From Rebecca billardiae RCC1528 (lineage: Eukaryota > Protista > Haptophyta), in assembly GCA_965240325.2 (NCBI GenBank), contig OZ251236.1:682001-746000 (forward strand): 64,000 nucleotides of DNA, given 5' to 3'. Positions 42,599-57,428 of this stretch are shown piece by piece. The notes under the pieces are model-generated. The model made no database searches. It was not told the DNA's origin and was given only the letters and a program-made list of their open reading frames with translations. The position numbers and the translations under genes were made by a program. Each line of letters starts with the position of its first letter. The stretch's first letter is position 1.

Positions 42599-43064
42599 CC
42601 ACGGCTCGTCTCGTCAACGGTCAAGTCTCACTCTCGTCATCAAGACGTACGACGTCGACGATGCGGATGTCGATGACTCCGCGACGATGACTAATTCCAT
42701 GATGGCGGGTTAAAGACACAGGCACGAGGGCGCAGCTCTCCTGATTCGTCTGTAGTGGTACTGGTCGAAGCTTGCAGCAGTGGCAGTGGTGTGAGCACGT
42801 TGATGTTGGTCCCCATGCCCATGGGCATGGCGGATGTCGTTGTTGTCGTCGTCCGGACGTCGTCAGGCCCACCAGGAAGTGCATGGGTACGAAATCAAAG
42901 GCGAGTGAGCATGTTGGCGTCGGCCAGGCCGTCCCCTACTTGGTCAGCAGCTGGTGCGGATGATGTCGTCGCCTACTTGGTCAGTGGCTGGTCATGGTGG
43001 ACGATGGTGTAGCCTGTTCTTGGTCAGCAGCTGGTGGATGATGTTGTGGCCGAAGTTAGTAGTA

Positions 43065-43846
43065 CAGGGTCTCCAACATTAAACTGGACACTTTGGGCAG
43101 CAGCTCAGCGTACGGCCTGTGGCTGCCTCGCGCGGGGTCAGGAGCGGCCAGCTCGGCTCGTGTGCACCCCACTAGGTCTGTCTGCGACCGCGCATAGCCG
43201 GGCAGCCCGCGTGGAGCACCCCTCTGGGTCATGCGGACAGTCGGCACAAGGCTGGTCGTGAGGGCCGTGAAGCAGCCGTGTGGCTTCTGCGCATGTCTGT
43301 AGCCAGCAAGCCCGCTCAAGGCCGCGCAGATATTATTACGTGGCATGGTCGATGACTATGCGGCATGCGCTCGACAGCCCTGGGCAAGCCCGGACGTAGC
43401 GCTACACCAGGAGTATATACGGCTCGATCGGACCAGCCTACCAGTTGCGCACCTCGCTTGCACAGCTGCTGCACAGCCCATCGATCGGCTCTGGCCGTGC
43501 AGGCAAGGGCTACAGTCGGCGCCACTACCCGCAGCGAACGCTGGAGACCCACCAGTGCGCGCACCAACCCGCCCGCCGCCAAATGCAACCGTGCGCCAGA
43601 TACGAATTTTAGCAGGCATGCCACCCGCGGGGGCTCCGTGGACCTGTTCAGAGCCAACCGCTAGTCGGTTGAGCTGTACATCCAAGCCAGCCCTGGCCAC
43701 ACGCTGAGCGCGCCGCTCGCTGCACCCACACCCTGTCGTCATCCGAGGAGTAAGGTCCATGGCGCTCATGCGAGCCTCTGGCCCATCTCATCGTTAGCAG
43801 CCGTAGTCAGCAAAAATCAGTGTCCGAACAATTGTTGGGGACCCTG
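43065..43846. mobile_element. MITE A, copy 1 (782 bp, Tc1/mariner-type TIR CAGGGTCyCCAACA)
   Basis: 14-bp TIR with one mismatch; TA on the outer flank. Confidence 0.85.
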
Positions 43847-46800
43847 TGTGCACACTCGCCTGCCGCATGTTGAGTGACTGTCAGCCAGGGAGCTGAAGAC
43901 GACGGCTTCTCAGAGGCCGCGCGAGCTCGACGGCGGCGCGCGCGGGCACGGTGGGCTGGCGCGGCCCCGGCGCGCGCCCATCCGGCCGCGCGCCGCCGCG
44001 CCAGCCGCTCCTGCACGCGGGCTGACTCAGGCGTCAGCCTCACCCAACCGTGAGCCGCCAGCTGCTTGCCGTGGAGCTGGTCGGGAGAGGATGGGGTGGG
44101 TCGGCTGCTCCCAGAAGCTCCCCACGCGCGCCGCGCGCGCTGCATGCGGGTGCGGCGGGTCGGCGCGGCCCCGCCGCGCGCCCATCCGGCCGCGCGCCGC
44201 CGCGCCAGCCGCTCCTGCACGCGGGCTGACTCAGGCGTCAGCCTCACCCAACCGTGAGCCGCCAGCTGCTTGCCGTGGAGCTGGTCGGGAGAGGATGGGG
44301 TGGGTCGGCTGCTCCCAGAAGCTCCCCACGCGCGCCGCGCGCGCTGCATGCGGGTGCGGCGGGTCGGCGCGGCCCCGCCGCGCGCTCATCCGGCCGCGCG
44401 CCGCCGCGCCAGCCGCTCCTGCACGCGGGCTGACTCAGGCGTCAGCCTCACCCAACCGTGAGCCGCCAGCTGCTTGCCGTGGAGCTGGTCGGGAGATGAT
44501 GGGGTGGGTCGGCTGCTCCCAGAAGCTCTCCACGCGCGCCGCGCGCGCTGCATACGGGTGCGGCGGGTCGGCGCGGCCCCGCCGCGCGCCCATCCGGCCG
44601 CGCGCCGCCGCGCCAGCCGCTCCTGCACGCGGGCATGGCTGCCGAAGATCCGCACGGAATCGGCCGGGCATCAGACAGCAGTACCCGAATAACGGTTCGA
44701 ATCGCTCAGTAACGTCGAAAGCAATGCCTGCCGGCCGCGGCGCGCCGGCGCGCAGGTCAGCACGGCGGGCACGCGCTGGTACGGACCACTGTGGTGCTCC
44801 TGCGAGCAGCTGCTGACGCGTTGGCGCGATGAGACCAGCGTCCTCGCAAACACGTGACCAGGTGGCCCAGTGCCACTGCCCTGCCTCCACACGCTAGTCG
44901 AGGGAGTGACGCGTGCCGAATGTGTCTCGCCGGATGACCACCAAGGCTGCTGTCAATAAATATGAGGTGGGTCTCGTCGACAACCCGAACTGCTGGGTGT
45001 CTATTTGAAATATACTCCGCAGATTCTGCCAGTGGCAGCTACGGAGCTACGCTCGTCGCCGAGATACCTTCAGTGTGCACACTCGCCTGCCGCATGTTGA
45101 GTGACTGTCAGCCAGGGAGCTGAAGACGACGGCTTCTCAGAGGCCGCGCGAGCTCGACGGCGGCGCGCGCGGGCACGGTGGGCTGGCGCGGCCCCGGCGC
45201 GCGCCCATCCGGCCGCGCGCCGCCGCGCCAGCCGCTCCTGCACGCGGGCTGACTCAGGCGTCAGCCTCACCCAACCGTGAGCCGCCAGCTGCTTGCCGTG
45301 GAGCTGGTCGGGAGAGGATGGGGTGGGTCGGCTGCTCCCAGAAGCTCCCCACGCGCGCCGCGCGCGCTGCATGCGGGTGCGGCGGGTCGGCGCGGCCCCG
45401 CCGCGCGCCCATCCGGCCGCGCGCCGCCGCGCCAGCCGCTCCTGCACGCGGGCTGACTCAGGCGTCAGCCTCACCCAACCGTGAGCCGCCAGCTGCTTGC
45501 CGTGGAGCTGGTCGGGAGAGGATGGGGTGGGTCGGCTGCTCCCAGAAGCTCCCCACGCGCGCCGCGCGCGCTGCATGCGGGTGCGGCGGGTCGGCGCGGC
45601 CCCGCCGCGCGCTCATCCGGCCGCGCGCCGCCGCGCCAGCCGCTCCTGCACGCGGGCTGACTCAGGCGTCAGCCTCACCCAACCGTGAGCCGCCAGCTGC
45701 TTGCCGTGGAGCTGGTCGGGAGATGATGGGGTGGGTCGGCTGCTCCCAGAAGCTCTCCACGCGCGCCGCGCGCGCTGCATACGGGTGCGGCGGGTCGGCG
45801 CGGCCCCGCCGCGCGCCCATCCGGCCGCGCGCCGCCGCGCCAGCCGCTCCTGCACGCGGGCATGGCTGCCGAAGATCCGCACGGAATCGGCCGGGCATCA
45901 GACAGCAGTACCCGAATAACGGTTCGAATCGCTCAGTAACGTCGAAAGCAATGCCTGCCGGCCGCGGCGCGCCGGCGCGCAGGTCAGCACGGCGGGCACG
46001 CGCTGGTACGGACCACTGTGGTGCTCCTGCGAGCAGCTGCTGACGCGTTGGCGCGATGAGACCAGCGTCCTCGCAAACACGTGACCAGGTGGCCCAGTGC
46101 CACTGCCCTGCCTCCACACGCTAGTCGAGGGAGTGACGCGTGCCGAATGTGTCTCGCCGGATGACCACCAAGGCTGCTGTCAATAAATATGAGGTGGGTC
46201 TCGTCGACAACCCGAACTGCTGGGTGTCTATTTGAAATATACTCCGCAGATTCTGCCAGTGGCAGCTACGGAGCTACGCTCGTCGCCGAGATACCTTCAG
46301 TGTGCACACTCGCCTGCCGCATGTTGAGTGACTGTCAGCCAGGGAGCTGAAGACGACGGCTTCTCAGAGGCCGCGCGAGCTCGACGGCGGCGCGCGCGGG
46401 CACGGTGGGCTGGCGCGGCCCCGGCGCGCGCCCATCCGGCCGCGCGCCGCCGCGCCAGCCGCTCCTGCACGCGGGCTGACTCAGGCGTCAGCCTCACCCA
46501 ACCGTGAGCCGCCAGCTGCTTGCCGTGGAGCTGGTCGGGAGAGGATGGGGTGGGTCGGCTGCTCCCAGAAGCTCCCCACGCGCGCCGCGCGCGCTGCATG
46601 CGGGTGCGGCGGGTCGGCGCGGCCCCGCCGCGCGCCCATCCGGCCGCGCGCCGCCGCGCCAGCCGCTCCTGCACGCGGGCTGACTCAGGCGTCAGCCTCA
46701 CCCAACCGTGAGCCGCCAGCTGCTTGCCGTGGAGCTGGTCGGGAGAGGATGGGGTGGGTCGGCTGCTCCCAGAAGCTCCCCACGCGCGCCGCGCGCGCTG

Positions 46801-47524
46801 CATGCGGGTGCGGCGGGTCGGCGCGGCCCCGCCGCGCGCTCATCCGGCCGCGCGCCGCCGCGCCAGCCGCTCCTGCACGCGGGCTGACTCAGGCGTCAGC
46901 CTCACCCAACCGTGAGCCGCCAGCTGCTTGCCGTGGAGCTGGTCGGGAGATGATGGGGTGGGTCGGCTGCTCCCAGAAGCTCTCCACGCGCGCCGCGCGC
47001 GCTGCATACGGGTGCGGCGGGTCGGCGCGGCCCCGCCGCGCGCCCATCCGGCCGCGCGCCGCCGCGCCAGCCGCTCCTGCACGCGGGCATGGCTGCCGAA
47101 GATCCGCACGGAATCGGCCGGGCATCAGACAGCAGTACCCGAATAACGGTTCGAATCGCTCAGTAACGTCGAAAGCAATGCCTGCCGGCCGCGGCGCGCC
47201 GGCGCGCAGGTCAGCACGGCGGGCACGCGCTGGTACGGACCACTGTGGTGCTCCTGCGAGCAGCTGCTGACGCGTTGGCGCGATGAGACCAGCGTCCTCG
47301 CAAACACGTGACCAGGTGGCCCAGTGCCACTGCCCTGCCTCCACACGCTAGTCGAGGGAGTGACGCGTGCCGAATGTGTCTCGCCGGATGACCACCAAGG
47401 CTGCTGTCAATAAATATGAGGTGGGTCTCGTCGACAACCCGAACTGCTGGGTGTCTATTTGAAATATACTCCGCAGATTCTGCCAGTGGCAGCTACGGAG
47501 CTACGCTCGTCGCCGAGATACCTT
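43847..47524. repeat. Three tandem 1224-bp B units joined by CAG; each holds ~3.3 copies of a 204-bp GC-rich subrepeat
   Basis: B1 43847-45070, B2 45074-46297, B3 46301-47524; junctions GAGATACCTT-CAG-TGTGCACAC. Confidence 0.95.
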
Positions 47525-48306
47525 CAGGGTCTCCAACATTAAACTGGACACTTTGGGCAGCAGCTCAGCGTACGGCCTGTGGCTGCCTCGCGCGGGGTCA
47601 GGAGCGGCCAGCTCGGCTCGTGTGCACCCCACTAGGTCTGTCTGCGACCGCGCATAGCCGGGCAGCCCGCGTGGAGCACCCCTCTGGGTCATGCGGACAG
47701 TCGGCACAAGGCTGGTCGTGAGGGCCGTGAAGCAGCCGTGTGGCTTCTGCGCATGTCTGTAGCCAGCAAGCCCGCTCAAGGCCGCGCAGATATTATTACG
47801 TGGCATGGTCGATGACTATGCGGCATGCGCTCGACAGCCCTGGGCAAGCCCGGACGTAGCGCTACACCAGGAGTATATACGGCTCGATCGGACCAGCCTA
47901 CCAGTTGCGCACCTCGCTTGCACAGCTGCTGCACAGCCCATCGATCGGCTCTGGCCGTGCAGGCAAGGGCTACAGTCGGCGCCACTACCCGCAGCGAACG
48001 CTGGAGACCCACCAGTGCGCGCACCAACCCGCCCGCCGCCAAATGCAACCGTGCGCCAGATACGAATTTTAGCAGGCATGCCACCCGCGGGGGCTCCGTG
48101 GACCTGTTCAGAGCCAACCGCTAGTCGGTTGAGCTGTACATCCAAGCCAGCCCTGGCCACACGCTGAGCGCGCCGCTCGCTGCACCCACACCCTGTCGTC
48201 ATCCGAGGAGTAAGGTCCATGGCGCTCATGCGAGCCTCTGGCCCATCTCATCGTTAGCAGCCGTAGTCAGCAAAAATCAGTGTCCGAACAATTGTTGGGG
48301 ACCCTG
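47525..48306. mobile_element. MITE A, copy 2
   Basis: Appears identical to copy 1; flanked by TT and TG rather than TA. Confidence 0.85.
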
Positions 48307-49530
48307 TGTGCACACTCGCCTGCCGCATGTTGAGTGACTGTCAGCCAGGGAGCTGAAGACGACGGCTTCTCAGAGGCCGCGCGAGCTCGACGGCGGCGCG
48401 CGCGGGCACGGTGGGCTGGCGCGGCCCCGGCGCGCGCCCATCCGGCCGCGCGCCGCCGCGCCAGCCGCTCCTGCACGCGGGCTGACTCAGGCGTCAGCCT
48501 CACCCAACCGTGAGCCGCCAGCTGCTTGCCGTGGAGCTGGTCGGGAGAGGATGGGGTGGGTCGGCTGCTCCCAGAAGCTCCCCACGCGCGCCGCGCGCGC
48601 TGCATGCGGGTGCGGCGGGTCGGCGCGGCCCCGCCGCGCGCCCATCCGGCCGCGCGCCGCCGCGCCAGCCGCTCCTGCACGCGGGCTGACTCAGGCGTCA
48701 GCCTCACCCAACCGTGAGCCGCCAGCTGCTTGCCGTGGAGCTGGTCGGGAGAGGATGGGGTGGGTCGGCTGCTCCCAGAAGCTCCCCACGCGCGCCGCGC
48801 GCGCTGCATGCGGGTGCGGCGGGTCGGCGCGGCCCCGCCGCGCGCTCATCCGGCCGCGCGCCGCCGCGCCAGCCGCTCCTGCACGCGGGCTGACTCAGGC
48901 GTCAGCCTCACCCAACCGTGAGCCGCCAGCTGCTTGCCGTGGAGCTGGTCGGGAGATGATGGGGTGGGTCGGCTGCTCCCAGAAGCTCTCCACGCGCGCC
49001 GCGCGCGCTGCATACGGGTGCGGCGGGTCGGCGCGGCCCCGCCGCGCGCCCATCCGGCCGCGCGCCGCCGCGCCAGCCGCTCCTGCACGCGGGCATGGCT
49101 GCCGAAGATCCGCACGGAATCGGCCGGGCATCAGACAGCAGTACCCGAATAACGGTTCGAATCGCTCAGTAACGTCGAAAGCAATGCCTGCCGGCCGCGG
49201 CGCGCCGGCGCGCAGGTCAGCACGGCGGGCACGCGCTGGTACGGACCACTGTGGTGCTCCTGCGAGCAGCTGCTGACGCGTTGGCGCGATGAGACCAGCG
49301 TCCTCGCAAACACGTGACCAGGTGGCCCAGTGCCACTGCCCTGCCTCCACACGCTAGTCGAGGGAGTGACGCGTGCCGAATGTGTCTCGCCGGATGACCA
49401 CCAAGGCTGCTGTCAATAAATATGAGGTGGGTCTCGTCGACAACCCGAACTGCTGGGTGTCTATTTGAAATATACTCCGCAGATTCTGCCAGTGGCAGCT
49501 ACGGAGCTACGCTCGTCGCCGAGATACCTT
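48307..49530. repeat. Fourth B unit (1224 bp)
   Basis: Appears identical to B1-B3. Confidence 0.95.
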
Positions 49531-50312
49531 CAGGGTCTCCAACATTAAACTGGACACTTTGGGCAGCAGCTCAGCGTACGGCCTGTGGCTGCCTCGCGCG
49601 GGGTCAGGAGCGGCCAGCTCGGCTCGTGTGCACCCCACTAGGTCTGTCTGCGACCGCGCATAGCCGGGCAGCCCGCGTGGAGCACCCCTCTGGGTCATGC
49701 GGACAGTCGGCACAAGGCTGGTCGTGAGGGCCGTGAAGCAGCCGTGTGGCTTCTGCGCATGTCTGTAGCCAGCAAGCCCGCTCAAGGCCGCGCAGATATT
49801 ATTACGTGGCATGGTCGATGACTATGCGGCATGCGCTCGACAGCCCTGGGCAAGCCCGGACGTAGCGCTACACCAGGAGTATATACGGCTCGATCGGACC
49901 AGCCTACCAGTTGCGCACCTCGCTTGCACAGCTGCTGCACAGCCCATCGATCGGCTCTGGCCGTGCAGGCAAGGGCTACAGTCGGCGCCACTACCCGCAG
50001 CGAACGCTGGAGACCCACCAGTGCGCGCACCAACCCGCCCGCCGCCAAATGCAACCGTGCGCCAGATACGAATTTTAGCAGGCATGCCACCCGCGGGGGC
50101 TCCGTGGACCTGTTCAGAGCCAACCGCTAGTCGGTTGAGCTGTACATCCAAGCCAGCCCTGGCCACACGCTGAGCGCGCCGCTCGCTGCACCCACACCCT
50201 GTCGTCATCCGAGGAGTAAGGTCCATGGCGCTCATGCGAGCCTCTGGCCCATCTCATCGTTAGCAGCCGTAGTCAGCAAAAATCAGTGTCCGAACAATTG
50301 TTGGGGACCCTG
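49531..50312. mobile_element. MITE A, copy 3
   Basis: Appears identical to copy 1; followed by TA. Confidence 0.85.
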
Positions 50313-50339
50313 TAGTTCAGAAGAGTCACTACAAAAAGT

Positions 50340-51960
50340 CTCCGCCAGCGGAGCATCCGGGCAAGGGGCCCAGACCCTCCGCCGGCGGAGATTTTTGTGG
50401 CCACGAAAAATCCCCGCTGGCGGAGCATGGAATGCTCCGCTGGCGGAGCCTGGGCTTGCAGGAATGACACAACAAACGTACTAGTTATGGTATCAGAAGT
50501 CTGTCAACCACCGAACAGCAGTCACCTCCGCTGGCGGAGCTCGCTAATGAGCCATGCCTTTTGTAAACTAATACACTCGGCACTTGAACTGAGCTCCGCT
50601 GGCGGAGCTTCGGGGGCGCCGAATGCCATTCTTGATGACCCACCTGACTTGAACTGAGCTCCGCTGGCGGAGCGTCGGTGGTCAGCGCCGTGTGTCATAT
50701 CGGAGAAATAATGCTAAGCCTTTCAACGCATTCATACTCTGCTGTGCCACACATTCAACCTCCGCTGGCGGAGCTCACTGGCCTATTCGACTTGAACTGA
50801 GCTCCACTGGTGGAGCCTCGGCTGCGCCGAATGTCCTTAATCGATGACCCACTCTCGACTTGAGCTGAGCTCCCCTGGCGGAGCTTTGGTGGCGCCGCAT
50901 GTCATATTGGAGTAACGCGGAAGCGTCAACCGTAGTCATATCTATATTGAGACTCAACCTCCGCTGGCGGAGCTCGCGGACCTACTAGTATTCAACTTTA
51001 ACTGAGCTCCGCTGGCGGAGCCTCGGCTGTGTCGAATGTCCTTATCGATGGCCGACGTCTTGACTTGAGCTGAGCTCCGCTGGCGGAGCTTTGGTGGCGC
51101 CGCATGCCATTTATGGGAATAATGTGAAGCCGTTAACCATAATCATATCCATATTGACACTCAACCTCCGCTGGCGGAGCTCACGGACCTATTCGACTTG
51201 AGCTGAGCTCCACTGGCGGAGCTTTGGTGGCGCCGCATATCATATTGGAGTAATGCGAAGCCGTCAACCGTAATCATACGTATCCATATTGATACTCAAC
51301 CTCCGCTGGCGGAGCTCACTGGCCTATTCGACTTGAACTGAGCTCCGCTGGCGGAGCCTCGGCTCCGCCGAATGTCCTTATCGATGGCCCACGTCTTGAC
51401 TTGAGCTGAGCTCCGCTGGCGGAGCTTTGGTGGCGCCGCATGTCATATTGGAGTAATGCAAAGCCATTAACTACCGTAATCATATCCATATTGACACTCA
51501 ACCTCCGCTGGCGGAGCTCGCGGGCCTATTCAACTTGAACTGAGCTCCGCTGGCGGAGCCTCGGCTGCGCCGAATGTCCTTATCGATGGCCCACTTGACT
51601 TGAGCTGAGCTCCGCTGGCGGAGCTTTGGTGGCGCCGCATGTCATATTGGAGTAATGCAAAGCCGTTAACTACCGTAATCATATCCATATTGACACTCAA
51701 CCTCCGCTGGCGGAGCTCGCGGGCCTATTCAACTTGAACTGAGCTCCGCTGGCGGAGCCTCGGCTGCGCCGAATGTCCTTATCGATGGCCCACGACTTGA
51801 CTTGAGCTGAGCTCCGCTGGCGGAGCTTTGGTGGCGCCGAATGTCATATTGGAGTAATGCGAAGTCGTTAACCGTAATACTATCCATATTGACACTCAAC
51901 CTCCGCTGGCGGAGCTCACGGGCCTATTCAACTTGAACTGAGCTCCGCTGGCGGAGCCTC
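50340..51960 (+). repeat. Left subterminal array: ~26 copies of CTCCGCTGGCGGAG in ~200-bp three-motif units
   Basis: Motif start-to-start spacing cycles ~42/68/90 bp, and the spacers themselves repeat. Confidence 0.93.
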
Positions 51961-52599
51961 TGCTTGTGGTTTGCTGCAATTGGGGCTGGGCAGCCTGGGC
52001 TCAGCATGGGGCAGCTGTTCACAGCCCAGGCGGGGCGTCACCGCCTGTGAGCCGTCGGTGGGCAGGGCCGACGGCGTCGCAGAGCTCATGCGTGGGAGCA
52101 GCGCGTCGAGGAAGCGATCAAGGTCGAGAAGGAAGGGGCAAGCAGCAGGGGCTGCCTGTACGTTTGTACATGCCTCCACACCGGTGCACATCACCCTTGC
52201 TCACTGCAGTCGTGAACAGTGCTGCCACTCATCTCATCATCGCTCACCATGCAGTGACGGCCGAGCTGCGGCGAACTCTCACAGGCACCGAACACGCATC
52301 GGCTGTGCCCGCTGGTGCTGGTATGCGCTGTCCTCTACTTGCTGTCGGACAGCAAGGAGACGGCACAGCCGCATCTGCGAGCGGGCGAGGTGATGCTGTC
52401 CAGTGTCCTCTGCTCAGCGAGGCTGAGAGGCTGAGCACGGATCACGGATAGTGAGCCCTGGTATCTCAACGCATCCAGGAGAGCAGTTGGTGCATGCCTG
52501 TGCTCAGACGTGCAGGACCAACCATCCGGTGCTGATTCAAGCACCCGCGCCAACAGCGGCGGCACTCAACTCCACGCTGCTGATGCGGCCGCACAGCTG

Positions 52600-53480
52600 C
52601 AGGGATGGTACCACGGCGGGCGACGGCGGGCGCTGCAGCTGGCAGCTCGGTGGTGCCTGCCCGAGGGGCCTGGGCGCCGGGCGCACCGAGCGCGATGACG
52701 CCTCTCGCATCGCCTAGCGCGCTGGAGCCGCTGTCATCCGATGCTGCTGTGCCCGCGCCCAGCTTGGGCTGCAGCAGCTGCGCTCGACTCCGCGCCGAGT
52801 GCGGCGGCAGCAGCGGGGATGGTGCCACCGCGGGCTGCGGCAGGCGCTGCGGCTGGCAGCTCGGTGGTGCGCGCCCGAGGGGCCTGGGCGCTGGGCACAG
52901 CGAGCGCGGTGACGCTGCTCGCCTCGCCCAGCGCGCTGGAGCCGCTGCCATCGCGCGCTGCGCTGCCCGCGCCCAGCTTGGGCTGCCGCAGCTGCACTCA
53001 ACTCCTCGCCGAGTGCGGCGGCAGCAGCAGGGATGGTACCACGCGGGCGGCGGCTATCACTTTGGCTGGCAGCTCGGTGGTGCCTGCCCGAGGGGCCTGG
53101 GCGGTGGACGCACCGAGCGCGATGACGTTGCTCGCCTCGCCCAGCGCGCTGGAGCCGCTGCCATCCGGCGCTGCGGTGTCCGCGGCTCCGCGCCCCGCCG
53201 GGGCAGCTAGCTGTCACAGCTGGCAGCTGCGCTCGACTCCGCGCCAGTGGGAGGGATGATGCCTCGGCGGGTGGTGGCGGTCGATGCAGCTGGCAGCTCG
53301 GTAGTGCGCGCCCGAGGGGCGTGACCGGCCTAGGCAGCAGCAGCTGCGCTGGACTCCGCGCCGATTGTGGCTGCAGCAGCAGGGAAGGCGCCACTGGCTG
53401 CGGCGGAGGTGGATGCAGCGATCAGCTCGGTTGTGTGCGCGCGAGGGGCCTGGGCGGCAGACGCGCCCAATGCGGTGACG
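52600..53480 (+). repeat. Degenerate ~214-bp GC-rich tandem repeat, mirrored at ~54350-55220
   Basis: CAGCTCGGTGGTG recurs at ~52643, 52857 and 53070, with a variant at 53294. Confidence 0.8.
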
Positions 53481-55859
53481 CCGATGCACGCGTCCGATAT
53501 GCTGGCCAGCAGCAGCCGTTGTGACACTTCTTCCGCCGGCTGACGGCAGCAGGCGGTACCATCGGTCACATTGGTGAATTCGAATCGGGGAGAACCCGGC
53601 AGGCCTCAGCCCCGGACACTGCTGCCTGCCAATGACCTGTGAGGGCCGCAGGCCTTCCGGGGCACGGGGGCCGCTGCGGTCAGCTCTTTGAGCTAGCCCG
53701 GCGCCGGGCGCGCGAACAAGTACGGCCCGGCGTCGGTGAGGCCGAGCAAGGCGCGCCGAAGTGCCGCGGCCCAGATCTCAGCGCACGCATCATCAGTACT
53801 ACGACATCACTGCGCCGCGGATATGCATCAGATAGCGCGACTGATGATGATGATGCGCCGCGCGCTCCCCGCTGACCGGAGCCCGACTACGAGTAGCAGG
53901 CGCGCATGATCTGAGCTGAGTACGTAAGTAGCCCGTGTCATCCAGTGGCGGTGTCACACTTATGTGACTCAGGAGTCGGAGGAGTCGTTATCGTCATATC
54001 GTCATCATCATCATGAAGACGCGCAATAAAACGGTCATCAGGCGGACCTGCGCTACCATACGCCGTCAATGTAATGCTGAGGGCGAGGCCGGCAGCGTAG
54101 TCGTAACCTACTACTACTACGTACAGAAAAAAGTATAGCGCCATCATAAGAAGAGTAGCTGCGTGTGACTCGTCACCGCGTTCTCAAAACTCCTGCGCTG
54201 CTGATCGGGACTCGGACGTACGCCGTCTTAAGCCTATATACCGGCGTGCGGTCGCAAGTCAATTCACGCGGCCCCTGCGACTCAGCGGCTCACTCACCTG
54301 GCTCATACGCAGCAACCGAGCAGTCACGGAGATCTGAGCAGCAGCTGTTAATTACCAGCCTGCTGCTGCTGCTGCCTGCGGCCGCACGCGGCGTGGAGTC
54401 GAGCGCACAGTCCGCAGCTGCCCGAACGGTTCAGCAGCATCAAATGGCAGCGGCTCGAGCGTGATAGGGGAAGCGAGGGGCGTCAGCTCGCTCGGCGCGT
54501 CCGTCGCCCAGGCCCCTTGGGCAGGCACCGTCGAGCTACCAGCTGCAGCGACTGCCGCCGCTCGCCGTGGTACAATCCCTGCTGCTGCCGCCGCACGGGT
54601 GCGGAGTCGAGCGCACCTCGTGCTGCTCCGGCTGGGCGCGGACACCGCAGCGCCGGATGGCAAACGGCTCCAGCGCGCTGGGCGAGGCGAGCAACGTCAT
54701 CGCGCTCGGTGCGTCCACCGCCCAGGCCCCTCGGGCAGGCACCACCGAGCTGCCAGCCAAAGTGATAGCCGCCGCCCGACGTGGCAACATCCCTGCTGCC
54801 ACCGCACTCGGCGCGGAGTCGAGCGCAGCTGCGGCAGCCCACGCTCGACGCGGGCACAGCAGCGCCCGGTGGCAGCGGCTCCAGCGCGCTGGGCGAGGCG
54901 AGCAACGTCACCGCGCTCGCTGCGCCCAGCGCCCAGGCCCCTCGGGCGCGCACCACCGAGCTGCCAGCTGCAGCGCCTGCCGCAGCCCGCGGTGGCACCA
55001 TCCCCGCTGCTGCCGCCGCACTCGGCGCGGAGTCGAGCGCAGCTGCTGCAGCCCAAGCTGGGCGCGGGCACAGCAGCGTCGGATGACAGCGGCTCCAGCG
55101 CGCTGGGCGATGCGAGAGGCGTCATCGCGCTCGGTGCGCCCGGCGCCCAGGCCCATCGGGCAGGCACCACCGAGCTGCCAGCTGCAGCGCCCGCCGTCGC
55201 CCGCCGTGGTACCATCCCTGCAGCTGTGCGGCCGCATCAGCAGCGTGGAGTTGAGTGCCGCCGCTGTTGGCGCGGGTGCTTGAATCAGCACCGGATGGTT
55301 GGTCCTGCACGTCTGAGCACAGGCATGCACCAACTGCTCTCCTGGATGCGTTGAGATACCAGGGCTCACTATCCGTGATCCGTGCTCAGCCTCTCAGCCT
55401 CGCTGAGCAGAGGACACTGGACAGCATCACCTCGCCCGCTCGCAGATGCGGCTGTGCCGTCTCCTTGCTGTCCGACAGCAAGTAGAGGACAGCGCATGCC
55501 AGCACCAGCGGGCACAGCCGATGCGTGTTCGGTGCCTGTGAGAGTTCGCCGCAGCTCGGCCGTCACTGCATGGTGAGCGATGATGAGATGAGTGGCAGCA
55601 CTGTTCACGACTGCAGTGAGCAAGGGTGATGTGCACCGGTGTGGAGGCATGTACAAACGTACAGGCAGCCCCTGCTGCTTGCCCCTTCCTTCTCGACCTT
55701 GATCGCTTCCTCGACGCGCTGCTCCCACGCATGAGCTCTGCGACGCCGTCGGCCCTGCCCACCGACGGCTCACAGGCGGTGACGCCCCGCCTGGGCTGTG
55801 AACAGCTGCCCCATGCTGAGCCCAGGCTGCCCAGCCCCAATTGCAGCAAACCACAAGCA

Positions 55860-57282
55860 GAGGCTCCGCCAGCGGAGCTCAGTTCAAGTTGAATACGTCC
55901 GTGAGCTCCGCCAGCGGAGGTTGAGTGTCAATATGGATAGTATTACGGTTAACGACTTCGCATTACATTAATATGACATTCGGCGCCACCAAAGCTCCGC
56001 CAGCGGAGCTCAGCTCAAGTCAAGTCGTGGGCCAGATGTCGATAAGGACATTCGGCGCAGCCGAGGCTCCGCCAGCGGAGCTCAGTTCAAGTTGAATAGG
56101 CCCGCGAGCTCCGCCAGCGGAGGTTGAGTGTCAATATGGATATGATTACGGTAGTTAACGGCTTTGCATTACTCCAATATGACATGCGGCGCCACCAAAG
56201 CTCCGCCAGCGGAGCTCAGCTCAAGTCAAGACGTGGGCCATCGATAAGGACATTCGGCGGAGCCGAGGCTCCGCCAGCGGAGCTCAGTTCAAGTCGAATA
56301 GGTCCGTGAGCTCCGCCAGCGGAGGTTGAGTATCAATATGGATATATGATTACGGTTGACGGCTTCGCATTACTCCAATATGATATGCGGCGCCACCAAA
56401 GCTCCGCCAGCGGAGCTCAGCTCAAGTCGAATAGGTCCGTGAGCTCCGCCAGCGGAGGTTGAGTGTCAATATGGATATGATTATGGTTAACGGCTTCACA
56501 TTATTCCCATAAATGGCATGCTGCGCCACCAAAGCTCCGCCAGCGGAGCTCAGCTCAAGTCAAGACGTCGGCCATCGATAAGGACATTCGACACAGCCGA
56601 GGCTCCGCCAGCGGAGCTCAGTTAAAGTTGAATACTAGTAGGTCCGCGAGCTCCGCCAGCGGAGGTTGAGTCTCAATATAGATATGACTACGGTTGACGC
56701 TTCCGCGTTACTCCAATATGGCATGCGGCGCCACCAAAGCTCCGCCAGGGGAGCTCAGCTCAAGTCGAGAGTGGGTCATCGATTAAGGACATTAGGACAT
56801 TCGGCGCAGCCGAGGCTCCACCAGTGGAGCTCAGTTCAAGTCGAATAGGCCAGTGAGCTCCGCCAGCGGAGGTTGAATGTGTGGCACAGCGCAGAGTATG
56901 AATGCGTTGAAAGGCTTAGCATTATTTCTCCAATATGACACACGGCGCTGACCACCGACGCTCCGCCAGCGGAGCTCAGTTCAAGTCAGGTGGGTCATCA
57001 AGAATGGCATTCGGCGCCCCCGAAGCTCCGCCAGCGGAGCTCAGTTCAAGTGCCGAGTGTATTAGTTTACAAAGGCATGGCTCATTAGCGAGCTCCACCA
57101 GCGGAGGTGACTGCTGTTCGGTGGTTGACAGACTTCTGGTATAACTAGTTTGTTGTGTCAATCCTGCAAGCCCAGGCTCCGCCAGCGGAGCATTCCATGC
57201 TCCGCCAGCGGGGATTTTTCGTGGCCACAAAAATCTCCGCCGGCGGAGGGTCTGGGTCTTGCCCGATGCTCCGCTGGCGGGG
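55860..57282 (-). repeat. Right subterminal array (inverted copy, one ~200-bp unit fewer)
   Basis: CTCCGCCAGCGGAG copies; six GGTTGA unit markers versus seven TCAACC on the left. Confidence 0.92.
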
Positions 57283-57304
57283 ATTTTTTGTAGTGACTGC
57301 CCTG

Positions 57305-57428
57305 AGTAGTTGGACTCGCCGTAGTTAGTAGTAGTTGGACTCGCCGAAGTTGGTAGTAGTTGGACTCGCCGGACAGTTAGTTAGTAGCGGTTGGACTCGC
57401 CGAAGTTAGTAGTAGTTGGACTCGCCGG
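57305..57428. repeat. ~25-bp minisatellite, 5 copies (TTGGACTCGCCGAAGTTAGTAGTAG)
   Basis: TTGGACTCGCCG at 57310, 57335, 57360, 57391 and 57416. Confidence 0.9.

Follow-up and report, generated by a model that had tools for sequence, protein, structure and literature searches.

Probable transposase excision scars inside multimers of a Tc1-like transposon with long terminal direct repeats

In a 64,000-nucleotide stretch of the genome of the haptophyte Rebecca billardiae RCC1528 (hereafter, the window), two sequence modules, A and B, form an array in which successive B modules are separated either by a complete A or by the trinucleotide CAG. Are these CAG joints scars left where a transposase cut A out of the array and, if they are, from what kind of element, and in how many events, was A removed? 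The preliminary description of this DNA proposed that internal copies of A had been excised without a flanking TA, and that the locus captures the birth of a satellite from a composite transposon.

Structure of the array and its CAG joints

By repeat mapping, positions 43065-50312 of the window (G+C, 68%) have the order A-B-CAG-B-CAG-B-A-B-A, with TA on both outer sides. The features, by window position, are as follows.

43063..43064, no strand: TA target-site duplication at the left edge of the array (one TA, reconstructed from a paralogous 25-bp repeat unit)
43065..43846, plus strand: A1, 782-bp end module (long terminal direct repeat) bounded by inverted ends of its own, CAGGGTC[T/C]CCAACA (repeat mapping)
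43847..45070, plus strand: B1, 1224-bp internal region without a transposase gene, containing 3.3 copies of a 204-bp tandem repeat
45071..45073, plus strand: putative CAG footprint 1, at the B1-B2 joint
45074..46297, plus strand: B2, identical to B1
46298..46300, plus strand: putative CAG footprint 2, at the B2-B3 joint
46301..47524, plus strand: B3, identical to B1
47525..48306, plus strand: A2, internal copy of A that was retained (filled joint)
48307..49530, plus strand: B4, identical to B1
49531..50312, plus strand: A3, right-hand end module
50313..50314, no strand: right TA target-site duplication

There are no differences among the three A copies (782 bp) or among the four B copies (1224 bp). 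Where A is present (slashes mark module boundaries), the joints read CCTT/CAGGGTC...GACCCTG/TGTG, with the left joint, GATACCTT/CAGGGTC, at 47517 and 49523 and the right joint, GACCCTG/TGTGCAC, at 43840 and 48300. The two empty joints read CCTT-CAG-TGTG. The joint sequence GATACCTTCAGTGTGCAC has two exact occurrences in the window (45063-45080 and 46290-46307; 0.01 expected from shuffles), which bears out the earlier observation that CAG stands at both B-B junctions from which A is missing (45071-45073 and 46298-46300). The trinucleotide corresponds to the first 3 bases of A and also to the reverse complement of its last 3. The spacing of the units falls from 2006 bp where A is present to 1227 bp where it is missing, a loss of 779 = 782 - 3. 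A third, identical B-CAG-B joint lies on another contig (G000:C21:140419-140421), within an A-B-CAG-B-A element. At all three joints, distributed over two loci, the absent bases are the same 779 bp, from base 4 of A through its last base, and the microhomology at the breakpoints is 1 bp (G).

The array is flanked by ...CCGAAGTTAGTAGTA on the left and by TAGTT... on the right. When joined with a single TA, these flanks make up a unit of a neighboring 25-bp tandem repeat (57396-57425), which therefore provides a paralogous empty site for the array. To the right of the array lies a foldback of ~7 kb (about 50318-57307) with TAGTT on both sides (50313-50317 and 57308-57312). The foldback sits in the 25-bp tandem repeat (57305-57427), with what appears to be a 5-bp direct duplication; the TA of its left TAGTT later served as the insertion site of the A/B array.

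Ends and target sites of the A module

A has the short terminal inverted repeats of a DNA transposon: 13 of the 14 bases match between its two ends. At least 40 near-identical copies of A are present in the genome, and TA adjoins 37/37 of the outer ends that were examined genome-wide. The combination of TA and the inverted end has 64 matches in the genome and none in the control. The flanks of inserted copies show a palindromic preference for W-A-V-TA (68% GC genome). At the inner ends of A, no copy has a TA. The A/B joints are CCTT/A and A/TGTG in every copy, the autonomous ones included, leaving TT and TG as the flanks. Because the inner joints lie outside the target context, they are not products of ordinary insertion. 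We also considered a Harbinger-type element with CWG target duplications, which is ruled out by CAG and CTG belonging to the inverted ends at every locus.

Copies of A also occur alone. In one of them (L021:2270-2290; G000:C7:1174251-1174271), the right end reads GGGGACC-GC-CCTG/TA, with two or three extra bases immediately inside the terminal CTG. Another lies in inverted orientation at G000:C20:1679960-1680741, 845 bp from an autonomous copy, an arrangement that could be suited to aberrant (reversed-ends) transposition.

B is the internal region of an autonomous element

About 15 copies of B are found at 11 loci of the 72-Mb genome (41 contigs). Most of these loci are A-B-A; the others are A-B-A-B-A on contig C33, A-B-CAG-B-A on C21, and the array in the window. 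A genome-wide search found no B outside A-bounded units and no B copy that has lost a terminal A.

The origin of B is revealed by two intact 4.4-kb copies of an A-INT-A element, where INT is the internal region (C20:1681588-1685960 and C29:736988-741368; element length, 4373 bp). In both, the layout is A, bases 1-752 of B, 1.4 kb of additional sequence, bases 777-1224 of B, and A, and the additional 1.4 kb carries an intact open reading frame (ORF) of 417 aa on the minus strand. The two copies occupy different TA sites and differ at 14 alignment columns, with one residue affected in the ORF. Since the two halves of B surround the transposase ORF, B is a deletion derivative of INT: it corresponds to the interior of the family's autonomous element minus the transposase gene. 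Correspondingly, A is the long terminal direct repeat of that element and not an independent module that captured cargo. The term composite transposon, in its sense of two independent insertions that capture cargo, finds no support here, since the autonomous element is itself natively built as A-INT-A.

Two other readings of the layout were rejected. An LTR retrotransposon or TRIM does not account for the 2-bp (TA) duplication, for ends of the CAG...CTG rather than the TG...CA type, for the lack of a primer-binding site and polypurine tract at the ends of B, or for an autonomous copy that encodes a DDE transposase. B itself, as an element that forms circle junctions with a 3-bp spacer, is ruled out by its lack of inverted ends. 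One further family member, of 5.8 kb (G000:C29:1191606-1197387), has an interrupted left A, of which only bases 433-782 adjoin B; its left inverted end lies 3 kb upstream, and its B contains extra 204-bp repeats. The interruption is probably a nested insertion.

The family encodes a transposase related to Sleeping Beauty

Searched alone against PDB, the 417-aa ORF has a single match, the catalytic domain of Sleeping Beauty (E = 2.7e-5), with whose motifs its QQDGARAHT and WPALSPDLSLIENVW align. A profile built from the ORF and its database relatives matches SB100X (5cr4; E = 4.5e-27) across the entire catalytic domain and the DNA-binding domain of Tc3 (1u78; E = 4.5e-4); in the alignment, residues D192, D309, and E352 do not vary. 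These are the features of a DDE/D transposase that carries a paired-like DNA-binding domain at its N terminus. Its score against the Pfam DDE_3 model is 27.5 bits, slightly below the 28.6-bit cut-off. D309 and E352 are separated by 42 residues and not by 34, and we therefore file the enzyme as Tc1-like within Tc1/mariner but not as DD34E. Identity to its closest database relatives does not exceed 41%, and they lie on contigs of ~2 kb, which are too short to reveal element architecture.

The Pfam mariner model (PF01359) has no match in the genome, and its control likewise matched nothing anywhere. The only genomic match above the DDE_3 cut-off is an unrelated, intact ORF of the IS630/Tc1 type (460 aa; DDE_3, 66.5 bits; HTH_32) on the minus strand of contig C31 (L061:1390-2772; G000:C31:420008-421390). 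It was dismissed as a partner transposase, as no A-type ends lie within 1.5 kb of it (3.4-kb locus).

Excision as the probable origin of the CAG joints

Canonical footprints of Sleeping Beauty-class elements are TA-CAG-TA or TA-CTG-TA, in which the middle 3 bp are those at the transposon end (PMC6943129), and in Mos1 the first cut falls three bases within the inverted repeat (PMC4344528). The residue at the three B-B joints is likewise the terminal 3 nt of the element, in the CAG form at each; the flanks depart from the TA-CWG-TA pattern, being CCTT and TGTG. Given a deletion whose two breakpoints both lie within 3 nt of the ends of an element with terminal inverted repeats, its presence at a second locus, an intact transposase related to Sleeping Beauty, and a microhomology of just 1 bp, excision is the best explanation, and we consider it probable that the joints are scars of a Tc1/mariner end module removed by a transposase. 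The preliminary description is right that the inner flanks are not TA; they are TT and TG. Against excision stand these flanks, the failure to find any B that has lost a terminal A, the D-to-E spacing of 42 instead of 34, and a 3-nt stagger that, for this enzyme, we infer.

We propose that the process would have begun with a non-autonomous Tc1/mariner element of the form A-B-A, its A modules in direct orientation and each with short inverted ends. Unequal exchange between A copies probably gave rise to (A-B)n-A multimers. The family's transposase would then bring together the two termini of either an internal A or a larger A-bounded unit and excise that segment, presumably with one cut at the element end, in the transferred strand, and one 3 nt further in, in the opposite strand. 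Each B flank would be left with a 3′ overhang of CAG; the two overhangs could anneal with each other (C:G, A.A, G:C), and repair would fix CAG, yielding B-CAG-B. By our analysis, the departure of a single A and that of a longer A-bounded unit (A-B-A) would leave identical scars; the same ambiguity, between the LTDR alone and a longer unit, exists for the KolobokP elements of animals (PMC9587614). Apparent intermediates are found in A2, which is retained in the same array, and in the A-B-A-B-A element on C33.

Would a Tc1-like enzyme act on ends that lack TA? In mariner elements, cleavage of the transferred strand depends critically on the T that adjoins each inverted repeat at its 3′ end, the A after it being of minor importance; Sleeping Beauty requires TA on at least one side, and Tc3 is only moderately affected (PMC4344528). 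The right inner end of A retains that T (CTG/TG), whereas the left lacks it (transferred strand, CTG/AA). Excision of an internal A is therefore plausible but perhaps inefficient. A low efficiency would fit both the survival of A2 and the failure to find any B that has lost a terminal A.

Alternative explanations and the number of events

That A was lost with no transposase involved, whether because replication slipped, a random break was healed by end joining, or the assembly is in error, is highly improbable. The 1 bp of microhomology at the breakpoints would suit such a loss, and arrays of identical 1.2-2 kb units are difficult to assemble. However, a single base is insufficient to steer a recurrent deletion, both breakpoints lie within 3 nt of element ends, and an assembler would not have invented the same joint at a second locus where the B sequence is different. 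It is scarcely conceivable that events ran in the opposite order, with CCTTCAGTGTGCAC ancestral in a tandem repeat of B and A inserted later, a formal possibility in whose favor we found nothing. Against CCTTCAGTGTG as the ancestral sequence, CAG lies within the inverted end of A at 37/37 ends with unrelated flanks, and an insertion would therefore have needed to take the exact place of a CAG that was already there. In addition, real insertions are all at TA in the W-A-V-TA context, which the B-B site lacks, B is confined to A-bounded units, and autonomous copies consist of one INT between two A modules.

Within excision by the transposase, the question is whether A left once or repeatedly. 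The preliminary description expected a mix of CAG, CTG, and small-indel footprints from repeated excision, and CAG alone from one event that was later duplicated. All B-B joints of the genome, three in number, are CAG, with no CTG and no indel among them, so that its second case holds as far as the footprints go. The conclusion attached to that case is too simple, as the B copies on C21 carry private shared variants. Neither the 13 other B copies nor the autonomous INTs have the 2 derived variants that the two C21 copies share. The C21 copies lack a cluster of variants private to the window and group with the single-B elements C39 and C12:2722354, at two further sites; the B copies of the window group with C12:365405. 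Because B variants differ by locus, B appears to have been duplicated locally at each, barring gene conversion between adjacent B copies, which could mimic local duplication. On these variants, the C21 joint and those of the window are probably independent, and excision would have occurred at least once in the window and separately at C21. If CAG and CTG were expected at 50:50, two or three CAG joints in a row would not be surprising. The units in the window are identical and its two joints therefore inseparable; they could be one scar that was copied by unequal exchange. It is unlikely, in our judgment, that a single excision produced all three joints, through one ancestral A-B-CAG-B-A that moved to both loci and whose B-CAG was then duplicated in the window by unequal exchange. 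Such a history would agree with the CAG common to the three joints, with the 100% identity of the window units, which makes their joints indistinguishable, and with the ability of A-bounded units to transpose whole whatever their length, as the 4.4-kb copies at two sites illustrate. It conflicts with the grouping of C21 and window B copies with different single-B elements, and the ancestral doublet would have needed several reversions to a single B, or gene conversion.

Satellite formation and a sister family

The birth of a satellite is more than the locus displays. At most three B modules stand in tandem in the window and two at C21, the genome has only the about 15 copies of B noted above, and nothing in the family amounts to the long head-to-tail array of satellite DNA. 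A sister Tc1-like family (33% amino-acid identity), with a 417-bp satellite, has arrays in which, judged by coordinates, the end module is present only at the outer ends (C30:255140-270932, C7:2670035-2687327, and C3:3670465-3683374). These arrays contain 3, 4, and 2 transposase-bearing units, respectively, and the one on C7 has an exact period of 3999 bp. The INT of the sister family has short inverted ends of its own, and one INT-INT joint is GCTGCTCACT-TA-AGTGAGCAGG (CTCACT-TA-AGTGAG; L065:490-510 and L066:495-512).

The restriction of sister-family end modules to the outer ends hints at their regular removal. We tentatively conjecture, with doubts that outweigh our confidence, that removal of end modules is a regular process in this genome, in which the enzyme cuts inner ends that lack TA and multimers turn into arrays of internal regions only (proto-satellites). 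The 11-mer AVTACWGTABT, which represents TA-CAG/CTG-TA in the preferred target context, occurs at 491 genomic sites versus 248, 84, and 220 for three controls that were matched in composition, with k-mer bias uncontrolled. This excess is suggestive and may represent old Tc1/mariner scars.

Comparison with known systems

Macrotransposons and bacterial composite transposons consist of two elements in direct orientation that mobilize the DNA between them. The A/B family resembles them in that the outer ends of two direct modules work together and single modules are also mobile. It differs in that the transposase is encoded between the modules and not within them. Moreover, since the inner joints lack target duplications, the A-B-A unit was not built by two ordinary insertions.

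The joints themselves are most like the footprints of Sleeping Beauty and mariner elements, with which they share the CAG residue, ends of the CAG...CTG type, the TA duplication, and a related transposase (PMC6943129; PMC4344528). Here, however, the scars have TT and TG flanks, lie inside a transposon multimer, were read from an assembly instead of an excision assay, and are exclusively CAG. The chemistry of such a footprint is textbook Tc1/mariner chemistry; its value comes from its location inside a transposon layout that has rarely been described. The A/B family thereby offers a natural test of how far a Tc1-like enzyme depends on flanking TA.

That layout has its closest likeness in KolobokP, a group of animal elements that occur as LTDR-INT-LTDR, as solo LTDRs, as (LTDR-INT)n-LTDR, and as LTDR-(INT)n-LTDR, whose INT-INT joints have been ascribed to LTDR excision and which have been termed "unlike any other DNA transposons" (PMC9587614). 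The A/B family has the same architecture: long terminal direct repeats with inverted ends of their own, a transposase encoded in INT, solo modules, multimers, and INT-INT joints. Even the A-(B)3-A-B-A array of the window has a direct counterpart in the KolobokP paper (PMC9587614). The KolobokP lineage is defined by a Kolobok transposase together with a His-Me finger nuclease (PMC9587614), and its duplications are of 3-5 bp; with a Tc1-like transposase and TA duplications, the A/B family falls outside it on both transposase family and duplication length, and no His-Me nuclease ORF was noticed in its INT. A full-text literature search found no paper that describes an LTDR-type layout in Tc1/mariner; the layout has so far been published only in another superfamily, and the mechanism was already known. 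The joints differ as well. INT-INT joints of KolobokP bear micro-deletions of 3-4 bp, whereas those of the A/B family carry 3 added bases from the element end and are mechanistically clearer. This 3-nt signature constitutes direct sequence evidence for removal of end modules by the transposase and not by homologous recombination alone.
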